In this document: positions 2,410 to 58,717 of the stretch, in pieces
How positions within the stretch are numbered: position 1 is the stretch's first letter
Layout of the letters: every line of letters starts with the position of its first letter
Assembly: GCA_964270895.1 (NCBI GenBank)
Contig: OZ185446.1
DNA length: 64,000 nucleotides
Strand: one strand, 5' to 3'
DNA from: Podarcis filfolensis
Lineage: Eukaryota
Notes under the pieces: model-generated
Database searches by the model: none
Seen by the model: the letters and a program-made list of their open reading frames with translations, nothing else
Told to the model about the DNA's origin: nothing
Position numbers and translations under genes: made by a program

Positions 2410-3137
2410 GTAGTTTTACCCTAAACCCAAAGCTTGGGTTGGACTTGAAAGCGGATTGTGTGTGTTTGGTAAATGTGTAAGTCAAGTGACCGACTTGGAT
2501 GATACCAAATAATGGACTTTTGTCTTCCCGCTGAAATCTGGAATTGGAAATCCAGGGAATTGGGGGGGGCATGAAGATATTTAATGGTAGCATTGTCTCT
2601 CTCTCTCCCTCCCTCATGCTTGCGCATGTCTGCAGTAAACCATCTCCTGCTTTTTTGAGTTTTGTTCCAGTACTCAGCTGCAGTTTCCTAAATGTCAGCG
2701 ACGGGAACAGATGCCGTTTGAAGCATTTCAGATGACACTGTTGATACTAACTCCCTGTTTAACAGACCACAGTGAGAGCCTATTAACCACCCACCAAAAC
2801 GTTTCCACCCTCACCTAACAACCCTACAAAGCATGGCCAACGTGGTGAACAGCCCAGTTTTTGTGGCGCCCTCCTTTCCCCACCCTCTTCTCCTGTCAAC
2901 TTCTCCCCCACTCTGTCCATCTTCTGTCCCGTAGCTGAGGGAGGGGCGGCGGGAAGGAAGGAAGGAGGGAGGGAGGCCTCCCAGGTCCAGCCCATAGGTG
3001 CAAGATTTAGTGCCAGCTTCAGAGACTCTATATCCATTCTTCCTTTCTGCAAGCCTATTTTCCCATACAGCTCCTTTTTTTTGGTTTATTGTGTATGTTG
3101 ACTTAAATTGTCTCCCACCATCTTTATTTATTTACAG

Positions 3138-3659
3138 GCTAATGGAAGTGCTAAGAGAGCTGGTGGGGACTGTAAAGCCACTTCCCCTAACCTGTCTGCT
3201 TCAAAAATCCCAGCCTTTCCTTCCACCTCTGGGAAAAGTAGCTCTGTTTCTAGTGGTGATAGCACTAACCTTCTGAGCCCCCCTACTAAAGCCTCTGCCC
3301 CTTCTTCTAACCCTCTCAGTCCTCCAACAGGTCGCCCTCCTCATTCCGCTTCCCTAATCCCCTCTGTCTCGAATGGCTCCTTGAAGTTCCAGAGTCCCGC
3401 TCACACAGGTAAAGGTCACCATCCTCTTTCATTCTCAATACAGACTCAAAATGGCCGGCCACCCCCTCTTCCTCCAGCTCCCTTTTCCTCGTCCTCCTTC
3501 TCCTCTCCCTCCTCCTCCTCCTCCTCTCCCCCATCACTGAGTCAAGGTTCGAAGAGCATCCGCTCGATCCACACACCCAGCTTCACCAGCTACAAGTCCC
3601 AGAACGGAAGTGTCAGCAAACCCGCCCCATCTTCCTCCATCACCAAGGAATCAACTTAA
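3138..3659 (+). CDS. KIAA1217: KIAA1217 terminal coding exon (ANGSAKRAGGD...SITKEST*)
   Basis: Acceptor tttacag|GCT at 3137/3138 and TAA at 3657-3659. Ser/Pro-rich tail similar to the mammalian KIAA1217 C-terminus (SASLIPSVSNGSLKFQS). Confidence 0.93.
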   Translation, partial: ANGSAKRAGGDCKATSPNLSASKIPAFPSTSGKSSSVSSGDSTNLLSPPTKASAPSSNPLSPPTGRPPHSASLIPSVSNGSLKFQSPAHTGKGHHPLSFSIQTQNGRPPPLPPAPFSSSSFSSPSSSSSSPPSLSQGSKSIRSIHTPSFTSYKSQNGSVSKPAPSSSITKEST

Positions 3660-20477: not shown

Positions 20478-20833
20478 AAGGTAAAGGTAAAGGGACCCCT
20501 GACCATTAGGTCCAGTCGTGGCCGACTCTGGGGTTGCGGCGCTCATTTCGCTTTATTGGCCGAGGGAGCCGGCGTACAGCTTCTGGGTCATGTGGCCAGC
20601 ATGACTAAGCCGCTTCTGGCAAACCAGAGCAGCGCATGGAAACGCCGTTTACCTTCCCGCCAGAGCAGTACCTATTTATCTACTTACACTTTGACGTGCT
20701 TTCGAACTGCTAGGTTGGCAGGAGCAGGGACCGAGCAACGGGAGCTCACCCCGTCATGGGGATTTGAACCGCTGACCTTCTGATCGGCAAGTCCTAGGCT
20801 CTGTGATTTAACCCACAGCGCCACCCGCGTCCC
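20478..20833 (-). mobile_element. Full-length Sauria SINE with 14-bp TSD
   Basis: tRNA-like head (gggacgcgggtggcgctgtggg on - strand) and (ACCTTT)n tail. TSD aaagcaaatgaata at 20464-20477 and 20835-20848. Confidence 0.95.
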
Positions 20834-21755
20834 AAAAGCAAATGAATACTTCTGACCATCTTCTGTGATGTCATGGTCCTTGTGTAAAAGCGTACCTACA
20901 CTTTGGAATGGTCTAGTTTTGTTGAATACATTTCAATGGTAACTATCTAAAGTTGCATGATGCACATGTAGAAAAACAGCTTTGATCCATGCTGGTTACA
21001 TATGCTCATCAATTTTAAAAACTTTACCTGCTGATTTGAGGCAATGCAGAAAACCTTCAATAGTAATTAAGGGTAATTGATCTTATTATTGTAAAATTTA
21101 TTCAATACTTTCACTGCCAGAACTCACATACATACACTGCACTTGAGCACTGACATATTACATTTTATGTAAATGAGGAAAGGGAGCGATTAATTTTAAA
21201 AATCATAATGGCAGCAAAGTCTTCTATTAACAAGGTCTGCAACAATACTTGACTGCAATGAATAACAAAGCTATTTTTTTTTCAACAACAAGAGCGCTAA
21301 AGCTTCTTCATTATTCTATAGCAAAACCCAAATCCCCCAACAAAGAAAGTGACTGAGAAAAATAAAATATAACACACTATTGAGGGTGAAGGGGTACACA
21401 ATAAAGTATATTTTTAAGAAGACTGAAACCAGCAATTCTAAACCATTTGTGAAACTAAAAGATTCCTGAAATTAAACATGCATGGTTTTTTTGTACTGTG
21501 CTATCCAGCCCATCAGGTTGTGCACCTAACCAAGATTCCCTATTACTGGTGAGCAAGAAAAGTTTGCATCACAGGAGGGGCTTCCTTATTATTGGCTATA
21601 TGGAGGGAGTGCTTTGGATACTCATGTTTTAAGAGTCCATGAAACTCCTACAAGCGCCCAATGACTAAAAGTCATTTCCTATGTGTTACCATCCTCTTTC
21701 TTCTGGTGTAAATCTGGAAGAGCTGAAACTAGTAATGATATTGATATACATTAAC

Positions 21756-28003: not shown

Positions 28004-28159
28004 CATGGTCATGGGATAGTTGGCGCCGAAAAGGGACAAGAGAGGTAGGGCTAGGAGGAACTGTAGCAATGGTGGGAGCGCGTGAGGCAGATGCTGAAAT
28101 AACAGCAGAAGCCGGAATGTGGGCGATATCATGGTCAGTACTGGGACTAGCTGGCTCAT
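28004..28159 (-). CDS. ARHGAP21: ARHGAP21 exon (D)[21 protein letters not shown]...RRQLSHDH
   Basis: cttgtag|AT...CATG|gtaagt, 156 nt. Confidence 0.95.
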
Positions 28160-28888
28160 CTACAAGGCAATACACAGCGAATTACTAAACCTTAAAAAGT
28201 GTCAATTAATTGGCCCAACCTGGGATAATGAGGTGTGGTATGGTGCCCCTGTGCCCTTACTGGACACACCAACACAACACCTCTGTGGCACAGACATTCC
28301 AGAAGAAAAATGATTAAAAATAGTTTGCTGCACTTTTGAAGAGGAAAAAACAAATTCATGTGGGGAAAAAACAAATTAATTAAAGAATACATACAATCTA
28401 ATTCACATTATTATTGAGATAATTGAATGAAAAGCAAAGATAAGATTGTAACATTTATAACACGGCTGGAAAAAAGAAGACATGTTAAACTGAAAAAAAA
28501 TGTACTATTGCAGTGTTCAGTTTCTTCATGAAATACTTTTTTCACAAGATTGTATATAAATCTAACTACATATACATTTGTCAATAAAACAAATCTTTTT
28601 TTAAAAAAAATCTATCAAGTGTCTGACTGCTGTCATTTAAGTGAGACTTCAATTAAAATAAGCTGGAAATAAGCAAAACAAACTACTTGAAAGTTATGCA
28701 TAAATAATCAAAACACACATTATAATTAATCTCCAGGCAAAGAAGGGAATTTTTTGTTATTTTCACAGAAAGCCTATGCCACTAGCACATATGCACTAGC
28801 ACAAGCACACCCAATGATCCTGTTATAATAATCAGTTCAGATTCACAGTGCAAGTTTTAGTATGTCAAAAGTTGCTACTGCTACATAC

Positions 28889-28976
28889 CAATTATCACTT
28901 CCAGTAATTGCTGATATAAGTTATCACAATCTGTACATATCCAGCACCTCGTAGTTTCTAGTGCCACAAGAGTCAT
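28889..28976 (-). CDS. ARHGAP21: Candidate alternative first coding exon of a short ARHGAP21 isoform (MTLVALETTRCWICTDCDNLYQQLLEVII)
   Basis: ttcttgactgttgcag|G ATG ... ATT G|gtatgt. Open frame whose phase-1 donor matches the next exon. No expression evidence. Confidence 0.55.
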
Positions 28977-29733
28977 CCTGCAACAGTCAAGAAAGCCTAA
29001 AAATCTTGAGATTCCCAGATTTGCAAAGATGCAGACCAGGCACGTATTCTAGAAGATAATATTAAGCCTGATCTATGAAATTCTAGAAATAACAGGATAA
29101 GCAGTTTTCCTAAACTTTCTATGTACAGGACAAAACTGTACAGCAATCCAGAGCATGAGCATGTTGCACTCTGATCATTAATATGTATTGATTCTAGGTG
29201 CTATGCATTTTAATACGCTGTGCTTCTGAAAGGCCCATTGAAATATGCAAGCCTTCACAAACAGAGGTTTATTCTTTTCTTTGAATGAACACATCAGCAC
29301 GTACTGCATTGTGTTTTCAAAGCGTAATTGATGGCTCTGCTTTAAGGAGGCAGTGCCTGTAGCATCCAAGTTTGGTAGTACATGCACATACAAGCACACA
29401 GACTTCTTCAAAATAATAATGACAACAACATTTTCAAGAATAGAAGGACTTAGCTAATTCTCTGGCATCTCCCCCTTTAAAACACTGAAACATTGCAGCA
29501 AGAGCTTATAGATGGGAGCAAGGCGTGACAATCCAGACTAAACACACATAAACACTTCACAGCTAAATATGAATATTCTTCCTAATGATTAGAAAACCAG
29601 ACACTTTAAAAGAAGCTGAATAATTAGCTGGCATTCATACAACTGTCACTTATTAACAATGATTTTATTTCTGAATAATTCTTAAAAGCAGGTCTTGAAA
29701 ACAAGATGCACTGTAGCATACATCCATACTACT

Positions 29734-29868
29734 NNNNNNNNNNNNNNNNNNNNNNNNNNNNNNNNNNNNNNNNNNNNNNNNNNNNNNNNNNNNNNNNNNN
29801 NNNNNNNNNNNNNNNNNNNNNNNNNNNNNNNNNNNNNNNNNNNNNNNNNNNNNNNNNNNNNNNNNNNN
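29734..29868. other. Assembly gap (135 N)
   Basis: Run of N. Confidence 1.
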
Positions 29869-34629: not shown

Positions 34630-35093
34630 AAAGGTAAAGGTTTGACCAAACTGCGGGAGGCAGTGGAGGACAGAAGTGTCTGGCGTGCTCTGGTCCATGG
34701 GGTCACGAAGAGTCGGACACGACTAAACGACTAAACAACAACAAAGGTAAAGGGACCCCTGACCATTAGGTCCAGTCGTGGCCGACTCTGGGGTTGCGGC
34801 ACTCATCTCGCTTTATTGGCCGAGGGAGCCAGCGTACAGCTTCCGGGTCATGTGGCCAGCATGACTAAGCTGCTTCTGGCGAACCAGAGCAGCGCACGGA
34901 AACGCCGTTTACCTTCCCGCCGTAGCAGTACCTATTTATCTACTTGCACTTTGACGTGCTTTCGAACTGCTAGGTTGGCAGGAGCAGGGACCGAGAAACG
35001 GGAGCTCACTCCACTGCGGGGATTCGAACCGCCAACCTTCTGATCGCCAAGTCCTAGGCTCTGTGATTTAACCCACAGCGCCACCCGCATCCC
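34630..35093 (-). mobile_element. Sauria SINE with 15-bp TSD, interrupted in its tail by a Bov-B fragment
   Basis: TSD taattaggtgatagt at 34615-34629 and 35094-35108. Body nearly identical to the 20478 copy. Confidence 0.95.
34641..34742 (+). mobile_element. Bov-B (RTE) LINE 3' terminal fragment
   Basis: ctggcgtgctctggtccatggggtcacgaagagtcggacacgactaaacgactaaacaacaac is the Bov-B 3' end with a (CAA)n tail. Flanked by aaaggtaaagg direct repeats. Confidence 0.92.
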
Positions 35094-35750
35094 TAATTAG
35101 GTGATAGTCTCAATTATATACTAAGTGACTGATTCAATGAACCATATTCCTTATTCCATGCACTCCTGAGTCTTTGGGCTTCTCTTTCTTAAATTTATAT
35201 GCCTGCCCACCTCTACCCCCAGTGCCACAAACCAAATCACTACTAAAGCTCAAAAGCAGTTTATGGCATGGGAACTACTTTTCAAAGGAAAACTTTTTTT
35301 AAAATCCCATTGAGGATGTCTAAGGGCTTAGCACGCCTAAGTAGCTCCCTGGATCCAAACCAAACTAAATAGGCCAAGTTAAACTAGCACTTATAGAAAA
35401 CTATTAAAATTCTTTAAATAGGTTTTTTTTAAAAAAAATCCTAGAAATAAAATACATCACAGCAAGGTCTTAAAAGGGTTTGGGTCAGTAGTAGCAATCA
35501 GGTCAGCAGTGACATGTAGTACTGTGTCTTTACTGTATGTTTAATTCTTTGCATATCGAAGATTTTGCAGAAATTAATAATGCTGACATAAGGTGCACCT
35601 GGTGAGGAGGGGATAGATGTTAGTAAGAGGCTACTGCCTCTGAGGGGAAAACATGCACTGGGTGGAATTGGCCATTTAGCAGCTGAATGCCTGCACACTG
35701 CTATTCCAGCCATCTACTGTTTTCAGTATAACCTCTCCTACAGTCTTAAG

Positions 35751-35889: not shown

Positions 35890-37132
35890 TAAAAACAAAT
35901 AAATTATGTCTGATCTGAAAATGTCCACTTACCTACTCAACTACCACAAGTAAGAATGACCTCCATGTAATGCAGGCAAGGAAGCTCTTGCCATTTTGAT
36001 AGGTTGTTCCCTCTTTCGAGCCATTAATATACCACAAGTAGGTCCAAAACATTATATAGGATTTCTAAGTCTATTTGGGAAATTGCACAATTTCCCTCAC
36101 TGCTGCTTGCTGGACACGGGTGCTGTGCGGCGACTAAAACCTGACAATGAAACTTGAGTATTTGAGGCAAAATTGCTCCCATGAACTTCAGTGGAAGAAC
36201 AGCATATGAATTATGTCTGTCAACCAATTAAAGAACTGTTAGTCAATTAGCAATGTGAGTTTAAGTGAATTAATTCATTGATTAATTGATTAAATTGAAA
36301 ACCCATCTATTTTTACCAGGCCTTTGTGGGTGGGGTAGTTGGTCAGATTTCGGTTTTTATTGTTATGATTGCTTCTGCTGAAGTTTCATCTTCTCCTTTG
36401 ACCTGTTTCACTTTACAACTGGTTTTAATTTATACTATTATACCTTGCCCTGGTATTGCAGTGTGATTAAAGTAAAGTTAAAAATATTTTACTATTAATT
36501 TATAAAATGGGTGATAACCAGTGTTAAGTCATAGGCAGACCTACTGAGATCAACTGACTTAGGTCTTAGTTTGTTATCAGCCCTCAAAAAAATATTCATA
36601 AATATGTATGTGAGGAAAACCAATAGCTCTGAAGCCATAAGTATACTTACTGCATTATTAGACAATGCATGAATATCATATAAGACATTATCTTAGAAGA
36701 GGCATTCCCTGCTTTGTATGTGAAAGAAGGGGGGATGCCTCTTAAGACTAATTAGCATCTGCTGTTTTACAAACATCTGCATTTAATAGAATAAGAATAG
36801 AATAGAATAGAATAATTAGGGCAGCTATTTAAACGACTGAAAGGTTAACCAATCAATAGATTCAATACTGCAGCCCTAATATAAATTATTGCCATCTACT
36901 TTGCTCTTCTTAATCTCTCCAGCAATGTCATGACTTAGCTGACCTTCACATGTATCAGCAGCTACTGTCAGCTCTCTGTGCACCTATGCTGCAGCACACC
37001 TGTGCATTGAGATATTCTTAGGAAACCAACTTACAACTTGAGTTAAAGTATAACTGTCACAACCACAGCCTCAAAAACCACATATGTAAGCATCTGAAAG
37101 CCTGATTAATGTTAACAGTACATCAAGTGCAT

Positions 37133-37176
<44 letters not shown>

Positions 37177-37177
37177 C
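37133..37177. repeat. (AAC)15 microsatellite
   Basis: Perfect trinucleotide run. Confidence 0.98.
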
Positions 37178-38203
37178 TTGTACTTCGCCCCCACCCCTAC
37201 CAATCCCATTTTCAAATTTATTCAGCATATTGCTATGACCTTCACTTGCCAGTTCCTCCATGGGGGCCTCTTTTATTACATAACAAGCACAATCTTCTTT
37301 TCCTTGCTTCCAAGGCTGCAAACCGACAAGCACACTACTCCCACACCACAATTCTTCAATATCTTCTTGACCTCTGTGTTCTTAATATACTGTCTGGTTT
37401 TCCCCTTTTCTGTTTTTTCTCCTTACAAATTACCTTATATATTTAGGGTTTTAAAGATATGTGCACATATACAAATTCAATTGTTTCTGTTTTACAAAGC
37501 TTTCCAAAAGATTGACGGCAATGACTGAGCTAAATAAGTAAGAGCCACACATGGCAATACAGATTCATTCACATTATTGCAGAATAAACCTTTAAAATCA
37601 CTTGTAGCAGTGAGGGTGTATAGCAAAACTTTTTAAATTAAATATTAACTTCTTAAGCATTTATCATGTCACAAAAATGCCTGCTACTGTTTTTATAGGT
37701 AAATACATATTAGATGCAACACAGAAAATTAAGCATGTTTATGTTCTGTTAACATCAGTGGGATTAAGACCCCATCACTTACACCAAGCTGCATGGGAGC
37801 AGTTTCCCCATGGCATTTCTGCATACAACTGTGATGTGTCTGTGGATACCAGAACCAAGAAGAGGTCTAATGGCACAGGTTGCTCACATCCCTAGGAGGG
37901 GCAGTGCTAATCAGGAGAAAATCTTTCCCCAGTCAAGTAGTTGCAATAATCATACATACACTGTAGTCACACTGGAAAACATTACAGGAAAACAGCTCCC
38001 ACACATGTACCTGTGAAACGGGCCTAGAAATACTGGAGCTGAACATTGTATTTTCTAGATTATACCTGCAAAAATTATGAAACTCAAATAAATTAACCAG
38101 AATGATGCATAATAATTTAAAATATATATAATAATAAAACCAAGTGGCAGATCCAAAGCCATGTATTAGAAGCAGAGAGATGAAAACCAATGGTTTAGCT
38201 CAC

Positions 38204-40163
38204 CTATGAATGGAATGCATGCCAAGGAATCACCAGGTGTGCTGGCGCTGGAAGCTTTCCTTTCTTCTATTATTTTTATATGGACCTCTCGACGTGCATC
38301 ATTGGGCAACCAACAAGTAGTCTCCGGGGCTGGCTCTTGATCATTTACTGCTAAGATGTAGGACTGATGCCGCAAAGGCTGTGGTGTCTGATGGCCAGAA
38401 GGAGACTTTTCTCGCAAGACAACTGCTTCTGTATCCTCATCTACAACATCCCTTGGATGGCTCTCGGATTCTTTTATATTTTCCTTTTCAAACTCTTGAA
38501 CCTTCTGTCTAATAGAGACATCCAAGTTAACAGAGGTAGTTAAATGCTCACTCATCTGTGGGACAAATTTGGCAGAAGCTAAACAGGTAGTAGGGGATAG
38601 AGTACTCGTGTCTATTTCTGTTTTGTGGCCTGGCACACTTTTTGCTTGTATCCTTGATTGTTGATTCAACAAACCACTGTTGTACACATGGTTTAGTTCT
38701 CTTTGGTCTGCGGTAGTAACACTATCCAGGCTCTGATTAAGGGAAAGCGACGGTTTTGCTGCATAGGGTACAGAAGTCTTCAATGAGTTGCTTCTTGTGC
38801 TTCTAGCTATTGAGTGAGATGATCTTTCCTGAAAAACGGTTGTAGGCTTTGAAGTTCCACCAGAGGTTGGCAAATCTCTGGCAGGCTGCTGTGATTTTAC
38901 ATCAGGTGGAGCCTTCTGGAACTGTGGGGTTGACCCTAAGGCTCTGCTGTTTATTCGTCTACCATCTGAGCCATAAGCACCCGGAGCCACAGAAAAATTT
39001 GAGCCTCGAAGAGACAAGTGAAATGCATGCTGCCGGGGTCTCTCATAAATACCTCGCCGATCATCTTGCTCAGTAAAGCCAGTCCACTTGTTAGTCTTTT
39101 TTCTGTCTCTGTTTGAATCTGCAACAAGATTCTCAGTGTGAAAATTTTCTAATGTTTCACCCTGCTTTCCTAAATAGTCCCAAGACTGTGTCCTGTGATT
39201 CCGGGGGCTGATAGATGGTGAGGTTAGCGCATCTTGAGAGGCACTCCTTGGCCACTCCTTCAACAATATAGGATCTTCAAGTCTTTCCTGGGACACACTC
39301 CTTTGCCGTATCTGAATGGACTGTGGGACCCTATCATGAGAGGTGCTTCTGCGTCGTACCTGTGAAACACTGCGATTTGGTACCACTTGATTATAATCTG
39401 TTGTGTTCTGAGATGCTGCTCTTAAACTATCTAACCTTTCCTGTATGGTTCTGCAGCCATACATGTGCAAACGTCTATTATCAATGTACTCTTTGTAGGT
39501 TTTGTAATTTTTCCAGTCTATGGTTTGGTGGGCATTTGGAGAAGTGTAGTGATTGGTAGTGACAGAGGGAGAACCTGCACTTTGAGTAGGAGATCTAGTA
39601 TTTGAGATCCCTTCTGGATGCCCTCCATAGCTTCCAGACTTGCTAGCTATTCCATTGGGATCTATTGGCCTTGTGAGTGGCGTCTGAGGAAGTACAATGG
39701 CAGTGGGCATTGGAGAAGGTGGTGATGTGGTTCGTGCTTTTGTTTTTATAGTGGTTTGTTCCTTAAGACCATATCTTACTTCCTCTATCCGATGTGATGG
39801 ACCAGTATGATTTATTCTACAGGATGACAAGTCTACAGCCTTCTCGGAAGGCACAACAACAGTTCTTACAGTCTCGTTGTTGCAAACACAGACAGCTGTG
39901 TTAGATTTTGCAATATCTGTTGGGGATGGAGGCACTTGTATTTCCATTCTGTAGGCCTTTTCTGGTTGTGCTGATGTCCGTACAGGTCTACTAGCCGGCT
40001 GCTTACCAAGTGAAGAGTCAGGAGGTGCTTTCTCAATATCTTGTGCCTTGACAGAAGGTGGAGATGCTAACCGAGGATAACATATTGGTGGTGGTTCAGG
40101 TATGTTGCGAGCATTACCACTGTAAGCTTCATTGCCTTTCAGGTAGGCATCCTGGGAATATGC
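38204..40163 (-). CDS. ARHGAP21: ARHGAP21 large exon ([16 protein letters not shown]...DSLACIPFI), 1960 nt
   Basis: tttgtatag|GCA ... ATAG|gtgagc. Includes [18 protein letters not shown] and [12 protein letters not shown]. The ORF track starts 72 codons late. Confidence 0.96.
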
Positions 40164-58369: not shown

Positions 58370-58717
58370 AAAGGTAAAGGGACCCCTGACCGTTAGGTCC
58401 AGTTGCGGACGATTCTGGGGTTGCGGCACTCATCGCTTTATTGGCCGAGGGAGCTGGCATACAGCTTCCAGGTCATTTGGCCAGCATGACTAAACCGCTT
58501 CTGGTGAACCAGAGTAGCGCACGGAAACGCCGTTTACCTTCCCACCGGAGCGGTACCTATTTATCTACCTGCACTTTGACGTGCTTTCGAACTGCTAGGT
58601 TGGCAGGAGCAGGGACCAAGCAATGGGAGCTCACTCCGTCACGGGGATTCGAACCGCCGACCTTCTGATCGGCAAGTCCTAGGCTCTGTGGTTTAACCCA
58701 CAGCGCCACCCATGTCT
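58370..58717 (-). mobile_element. Full-length Sauria SINE, more diverged copy
   Basis: Same body as the 20478 and 34630 copies. Possible short TSD ctagta. Confidence 0.93.

Follow-up and report, generated by a model that had tools for sequence, protein, structure and literature searches.

The question raised by this locus is whether a long intron of a lizard RhoGAP gene contains a coding exon from which a second, shorter form of the protein could start. The sequence analysed is a 64,000-nt stretch of contig OZ185446.1 (assembly GCA_964270895.1) of Podarcis filfolensis, referred to here as the window. Homology identifies the host gene as ARHGAP21: a tblastn search with the ARHGAP21 model of Podarcis lilfordi (P0138) yielded 19 collinear segments on the minus strand of the window, with an identity over the long exons of 97-100%, or about 99% taken together, and homologues of the gene carry the PH and RhoGAP Pfam domains. 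In its long form, as represented by P0138, ARHGAP21 consists of a PDZ domain, a disordered region, a PH domain, an Arf-binding domain and a RhoGAP domain. The exons from position 28159 downstream would be common to this protein and a putative short form, in which 29 residues replace everything upstream of the exon encoding DEPASP. Convergent to ARHGAP21 lies a neighbouring gene with long, Glu/Ser/Pro-rich open frames on the plus strand (219-1775 and 3108-3659); the gene in the corresponding position at the quail locus carries an AIP3 domain, which we take to fit a sickle-tail/KIAA1217-like gene.

The candidate exon lies on the minus strand within an intron of roughly 10 kb and spans 89 nt (28889..28977) when delimited by an acceptor that is specific to squamates. 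This acceptor, ttcttgactgttgcag followed by G, is cut at 28978/28977, with its pyrimidine tract and AG (28978..28993) immediately 5' of G-ATG. The coding part (28890..28976), defined by translation, alignment and pN/pS, comprises the ATG at 28976-28974 and 28 further codons, or 29 sense codons in all, after which the G at 28889 forms the first base of a split Asp codon and is followed by the phase-1 donor GTATGT (28883..28888). The next constitutive exon (28004..28159, minus strand) accepts phase 1 and opens with AT GAG CCA, so that G and AT join in frame to GAT, the Asp of DEPASP. Acceptor, ATG, 29-codon frame and a phase-1 donor fitting the DEPASP exon had all been claimed in a preliminary description of the window and are confirmed in the sequence. 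The in-frame stop which it had placed about 20 codons upstream is in fact more distant, the nearest being a TAG at 29051-29049, 25 codons 5' of the ATG. The exon segment is single-copy within the window.

Splice signals do not by themselves distinguish such a segment from the many exon-like stretches of a long intron. The exon scores 8.6 bits for its acceptor and 6.3 bits for its donor; of the neighbouring constitutive sites, the acceptor at 28159 reaches 6.1 bits and the donor after 38204 reaches 9.3 bits. All of these scores, and the chance estimate derived from them, are rough, as the matrices are approximate. At thresholds of 6 bits for both sites, the 10-kb intron contains five acceptor-donor pairs enclosing an ATG-started phase-1 open frame, at least two of which use the donor of this very exon; at 4 bits for both sites there are 35. 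By splice-site quality alone, the exon is not clearly above chance, and the yield of several to dozens of ATG-started phase-1 pseudo-exons at moderate thresholds is what speaks for a reading as a chance pseudo-exon in a long intron. That the exon is more than this follows from its conservation across species and not from its splice signals. The same intron also contains a trinucleotide microsatellite at 37109-37180 which reads as a poly-Asn/poly-Val open frame. Three same-orientation copies of an interspersed repeat of roughly 330 nt, 91-93% identical to one another and each with a 75-codon open frame, lie on the plus strand of the window at 20500-20850, 34760-35096 and 58387-58711. The repeat is probably a lizard SINE-like element residing in ARHGAP21 introns; ARAGORN found no tRNA-like part in it.

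A cross-species comparison of the kind proposed in the preliminary description was carried out on loci fetched through related proteins, which had been found by searching first with the last exon and next with an N-terminal portion of an incomplete quail protein. Intact copies, with the ATG, 29 codons and a phase-1 GT, are found in the gecko Gekko kuhli (L002:9929-10016; 25 of 29 residues identical to the lizard), the turtle Platysternon (L007:58857-58944; 21/29), the quail Callipepla (L001:9254-9341; 19/29) and the frog Ranitomeya (L003:10001-10088; 12 of 26 aligned residues), in the last of which the exon is the annotated start of the protein. Frame, ATG, donor and phase have thus been kept in all four, as in the lizard, and the tetrapod copies contain no indels. 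Two teleosts retain the phase-1 GT donor and the cysteine core of the exon; homology to the fish sequences rests on about 17 aligned residues together with position and phase, with tblastn E-values of 0.005 and 0.02 within each locus. The distance from the exon to the DEPxSP exon downstream of it is 530-780 nt in gecko, turtle, quail and cobra, and a purine occupies position -3 of the ATG in all amniotes compared. When the 10-kb lizard intron is compared with that of the quail, alignable sequence is confined to two blocks: one contains the exon and about 20 nt of flank at either end, the other lies about 200-340 nt further upstream. These data refute the pseudo-exon reading, which is left with a negligible probability: orthologous copies that are intact and in frame occur in six further vertebrate genomes, amid intron sequence that cannot be aligned.

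An intact exon was not recovered from every locus. The copy of the cobra Naja naja (L006:5008-5095; 21/29 residues identical) has decayed: codon 23 is an in-frame TAG and the GT of the donor reads GC, which looks like a loss of the short isoform in this species or an assembly error. It is still 72% similar in spite of both defects, and the DNA may therefore be retained for another reason. This is one of the observations in favour of a different explanation, namely that the segment is a conserved non-coding element (an intronic enhancer or part of a non-coding transcript) in which the open frame is fortuitous and the gene models that use it are artefacts. In the mole-rat Fukomys, the sole mammal examined, neither tblastn nor a peptide HMM on six-frame translations nor nhmmer detected the exon within 20 kb upstream of the DEPTSP exon; as a gap of 20 N lies 1.6 kb upstream of the DEPTSP exon, this is a non-detection and not proof of absence. 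The homologous intron of thrush ARHGAP23, 833 nt long, is without such an exon.

Two further squamate loci deserve mention in their own right. At the locus of Sphaerodactylus townsendi (L010:6180-18312), the interval from the PDZ exon to the DEPTSP exon contains neither the large exon for the disordered region nor the conserved intron blocks nor the alternative exon, and is spanned in the RefSeq model by an unrelated exon of 26 codons (L010:17210-17287); either a deletion or an assembly collapse would produce this picture, and the locus is uninformative for the exon. The 'ARHGAP21-like' protein P0184 of Erythrolamprus reginae (1257 aa) was rejected as an orthologous locus since it is intronless: 3.8 kb of genomic sequence translate into it exactly (L009:1001-4774), and it probably represents a processed ARHGAP21 retrocopy in which the frame is intact.

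The synonymous bias that the preliminary description had named as supporting evidence is present: the sum over amniote pairs gives a pN/pS of 0.32 in the frame of the ATG vs 0.88 and 0.78 in the other two frames, and the pairwise Nei-Gojobori dN/dS lies between 0.10 and 0.40 in every pair for which it can be calculated. The synonymous excess is significant by Fisher's test in two phylogenetically independent pairs, lizard-gecko (p=0.001) and turtle-quail (p=0.015). The ATG frame alone is open in all five species, the other frames containing one to four stops in every species. Within the alignment, C12, C15, C18, Y22 and E27 are invariant from teleosts to sauropsids, which defines a core motif C-x2-C-x2-C-x3-Y. 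Judged from these patterns, the exon is under frame-specific purifying selection. Against a non-coding element stand a synonymous bias that is specific to the ATG frame, cysteines that are invariant from fish to birds, and the retention of ATG, 29 codons, GT and phase 1 in tetrapods without indels and of donor and phase in the two teleosts; this explanation is considered very unlikely.

Gene models of other species provide a further view of the exon. In the frog Ranitomeya imitator, the model P0158 (1157 aa) opens with 29 residues that match the lizard segment in length and pattern, and continues with DEPTSP. The models P0146 of the tarpon Megalops atlanticus and P0150 of Muraenolepis orangiensis have a C-x2-C-x-D-C-x3-Y...E core immediately before DEPxSP. 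The homologous exon is thus part of the annotated N-terminus of PDZ-less ARHGAP21 models in all three species, which share with the lizard the position of the exon, the phase-1 DEPxSP junction and the cysteine core; unlike the lizard, the two fish models have a longer, unrelated sequence before this core. The Gekko kuhli model P0136 starts with MEAII-DEP, that is, at an internal Met of the homologous exon, and omits the cysteine core. The main claim of the preliminary description, a PDZ-less isoform with a CxxCxxC N-terminus, gains support from these models as well as from the conservation of the exon. At the same time, all PDZ-less models with the homologous exon are automated predictions, unnamed or hypothetical, and at the loci of Gekko kuhli (L002), Megalops (L004) and Muraenolepis (L005) the predictors have divided ARHGAP21 in two exactly at the alternative exon, with the PDZ part as an N-terminal gene and the PH-RhoGAP part as a C-terminal one. 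The automated origin of the frog and fish models and the split of the gene here by three predictors are points on the side of the non-coding explanation. No equivalent PDZ-less model for the lizard was found among the models retrieved.

A profile of the exon run against 1.84 billion representative sequences gave three matches, and among its results were two further intact copies of the exon (P0230 and P0231), which are unspliced genomic open frames from Logan assemblies. No unrelated protein family was matched in this search, which is no gauge of how widely the exon is annotated, as cluster representatives of the long isoform may hide short ones. A word search with residues 1-45 of P0158 returned the query alone; it depends on shared 5-mers and is hence uninformative.

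The next point to consider is whether the exon begins a transcript or is spliced into one. An AG directly before G-ATG is present in lizard, gecko and cobra (the last with a poor pyrimidine tract), and the corresponding position reads cacA in the turtle, cacG in the quail and cccc in the frog. The lack of an AG at this position fits a first exon in turtle, quail and frog, and the restriction of the AG to squamates suggests that ancestrally the exon opened the transcript, under a promoter of its own. From this comparison, the acceptor is a squamate novelty that arose by a C-to-G change. If the exon is a true first exon in the lizard as well, its 5' end would lie upstream of 28977, at the start of transcription.

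In squamates, the acceptor means that the exon could also serve as an internal exon, and the preliminary description had presented it as a poison exon for the long form. Such an NMD-triggering cassette would be inserted after the large exon for the disordered region of the long form (38204..39947, minus strand; 39947 being the limit of the open frame and not a mapped 5' boundary) and ahead of the exon at 28159, and would send the long transcript into decay. The large exon ends in phase 1 with ATA G at 38204, and its junction with 28977 would read GGA TGA, an immediate stop with many exons downstream of it. Pyrimidine tract and AG are good in lizard and gecko, the lizard acceptor exceeding that of the constitutive exon at 28159 by the rough scores given above, and use of the acceptor in the gecko would strip an out-of-frame ATG at -10 from the mRNA. 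The acceptor is absent, on the other hand, from turtle, quail and frog, and a signal without conservation outside squamates cannot explain why the exon exists or why it has been conserved for more than 300 million years. Moreover, a poison exon would be expected to have a conserved acceptor and the frame-independent nucleotide conservation typical of this class, and what is seen here is codon-like change. Of the poison-exon claim, the stop on inclusion is real at the level of the sequence, while the claim as made is unsupported, with an acceptor confined to squamates and an exon that evolves as coding sequence. Poisoning is compatible with a role as first exon and would be, at most, a squamate-specific by-product or added layer of regulation; we consider it unlikely even in this form.

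A first exon with its own promoter directs attention to the second conserved block of the intron, a non-coding stretch at 29150..29345 (minus strand), 174-369 nt upstream of the ATG, which was delimited by blastn and alignment. In blastn comparisons it is 89% identical to the gecko, 83% to the cobra, 78% to the turtle and 74% to the quail, and it was not found at the frog, fish and mole-rat loci. Its clearly non-coding conservation next to the exon is a further argument for the non-coding explanation discussed above. We regard the conserved block as a candidate for the promoter, or for a proximal enhancer, of the predicted short isoform. AT-rich in composition, the region has no CpG island (CpG observed/expected 0.27). 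A TATTAAT at 29183-29177 precedes a conserved TCATG (A at 29156) by 28 nt; together they could be a TATA-like element plus initiator, which is no more than a lead. Depletion of upstream ATGs was considered as evidence for a 5'-UTR and rejected: the 180 nt upstream of the lizard start codon are free of ATG (P about 0.03), but this is not the case in the other species, where upstream ATGs occur near the start codon (gecko -10, turtle -29, quail -45). A run of 135 N (29734-29868) lies about 760 nt upstream of the exon and roughly 400 nt upstream of the conserved block, and could hide part of the promoter region.

Taken together, the evidence is best explained if ARHGAP21 has a genuine alternative 5' coding exon, conserved over a very long evolutionary time, that would give rise to a PDZ-less isoform, a reading to which we assign a probability of about 0.78. 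Transcription would start inside the roughly 10-kb intron, with the block at 29150-29345 acting as the likely promoter or enhancer. The first coding exon of the mRNA would contribute 29 residues, a phase-1 splice would connect this exon to the one at 28159, and the encoded protein, predicted at about 1,190 aa, would have the PH, Arf-binding and RhoGAP domains but neither the PDZ domain nor the disordered region of roughly 600 aa. The three invariant cysteines may be lipidated or metal-bound, through which the PDZ-less form would attach to membranes or to partners.

The nature of this N-terminus is less clear than its conservation. AlphaFold predicts a single helix for the exon (30-residue alignment), with a pLDDT of 74 in the best model and of 53-59 in the other four; as the models agree poorly, the helix counts only as a hint. 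The cysteines are spaced i, i+3, i+6, with a 3-4 pattern of hydrophobic residues. Searches with the exon peptide in Pfam, among PDB sequences and in the ESM Atlas gave nothing above threshold. A ferredoxin-type 4Fe-4S site (C-x2-C-x2-C-x3-C-P) was considered and rejected, as the exon has Tyr instead of Cys at x3 and no fourth cysteine; the Pfam family Fer4_Nqo3 matches the exon with a sub-threshold score of 15.5 bits (E 0.021; cut-off 27). The S-palmitoylated N-termini of GAP-43 and PSD-95 are membrane anchors built on N-terminal cysteine clusters. The lizard exon resembles them in its short length, its N-terminal position and its clustered, invariant cysteines next to hydrophobic residues, and differs from them in the strict C-x2-C-x2-C spacing within a predicted helix; metal binding would be an equally good alternative. 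Palmitoylation or metal binding of the cysteine cluster is speculative, and the more specific proposal of an amphipathic helix, lipidated by S-acylation or binding metal, that would localise the short form in place of the PDZ domain is put forward tentatively, from the model and the cysteine pattern.

In the full-text literature searched, no description of a PDZ-less or alternative-first-exon isoform of ARHGAP21 was found, and the protein is treated there only as a long, PDZ-containing one. The exon is thus already included in a few automated gene models of other species, with no description found in the literature. For rat Arhgap21, two novel CAGE-supported start sites have been reported, which are not located in the text (PMC9892061), and no link between them and the lizard exon could be made. 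A parallel exists in DLC1, for which five isoforms from alternative promoters are reported (PMC5118400); the arrangement proposed here is alike, with internal or alternative promoters leading to RhoGAP proteins that differ N-terminally and have the same catalytic part. A wider reading would be that the exon encodes an ancient, self-contained targeting module, a helix anchored by lipid or bridged by metal, that pre-dates the split of teleosts and tetrapods, confers a localisation of its own and with it a separate Rho/Cdc42-Arf1 function, and has been lost independently in snakes and, as it seems, in at least some mammals. Such losses would explain why the module has been overlooked in a mammal-centred literature; we regard this wider reading as doubtful.

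A cysteine motif that has stayed invariant for over 400 million years in a predicted second, promoter-driven form of ARHGAP21 implies a distinct, selected function, for example a different localisation or a different set of partners for the same PH-ArfBD-GAP machinery. For annotation, the exon has the effect that ARHGAP21 is split into two genes by three predictors. For experiments, it means that the predicted short isoform would escape knock-outs or morpholinos that target the 5' exons of the gene in fish, frog or chick. If the exon is truly absent in mammals and snakes, these lineages would offer a natural loss-of-isoform comparison.
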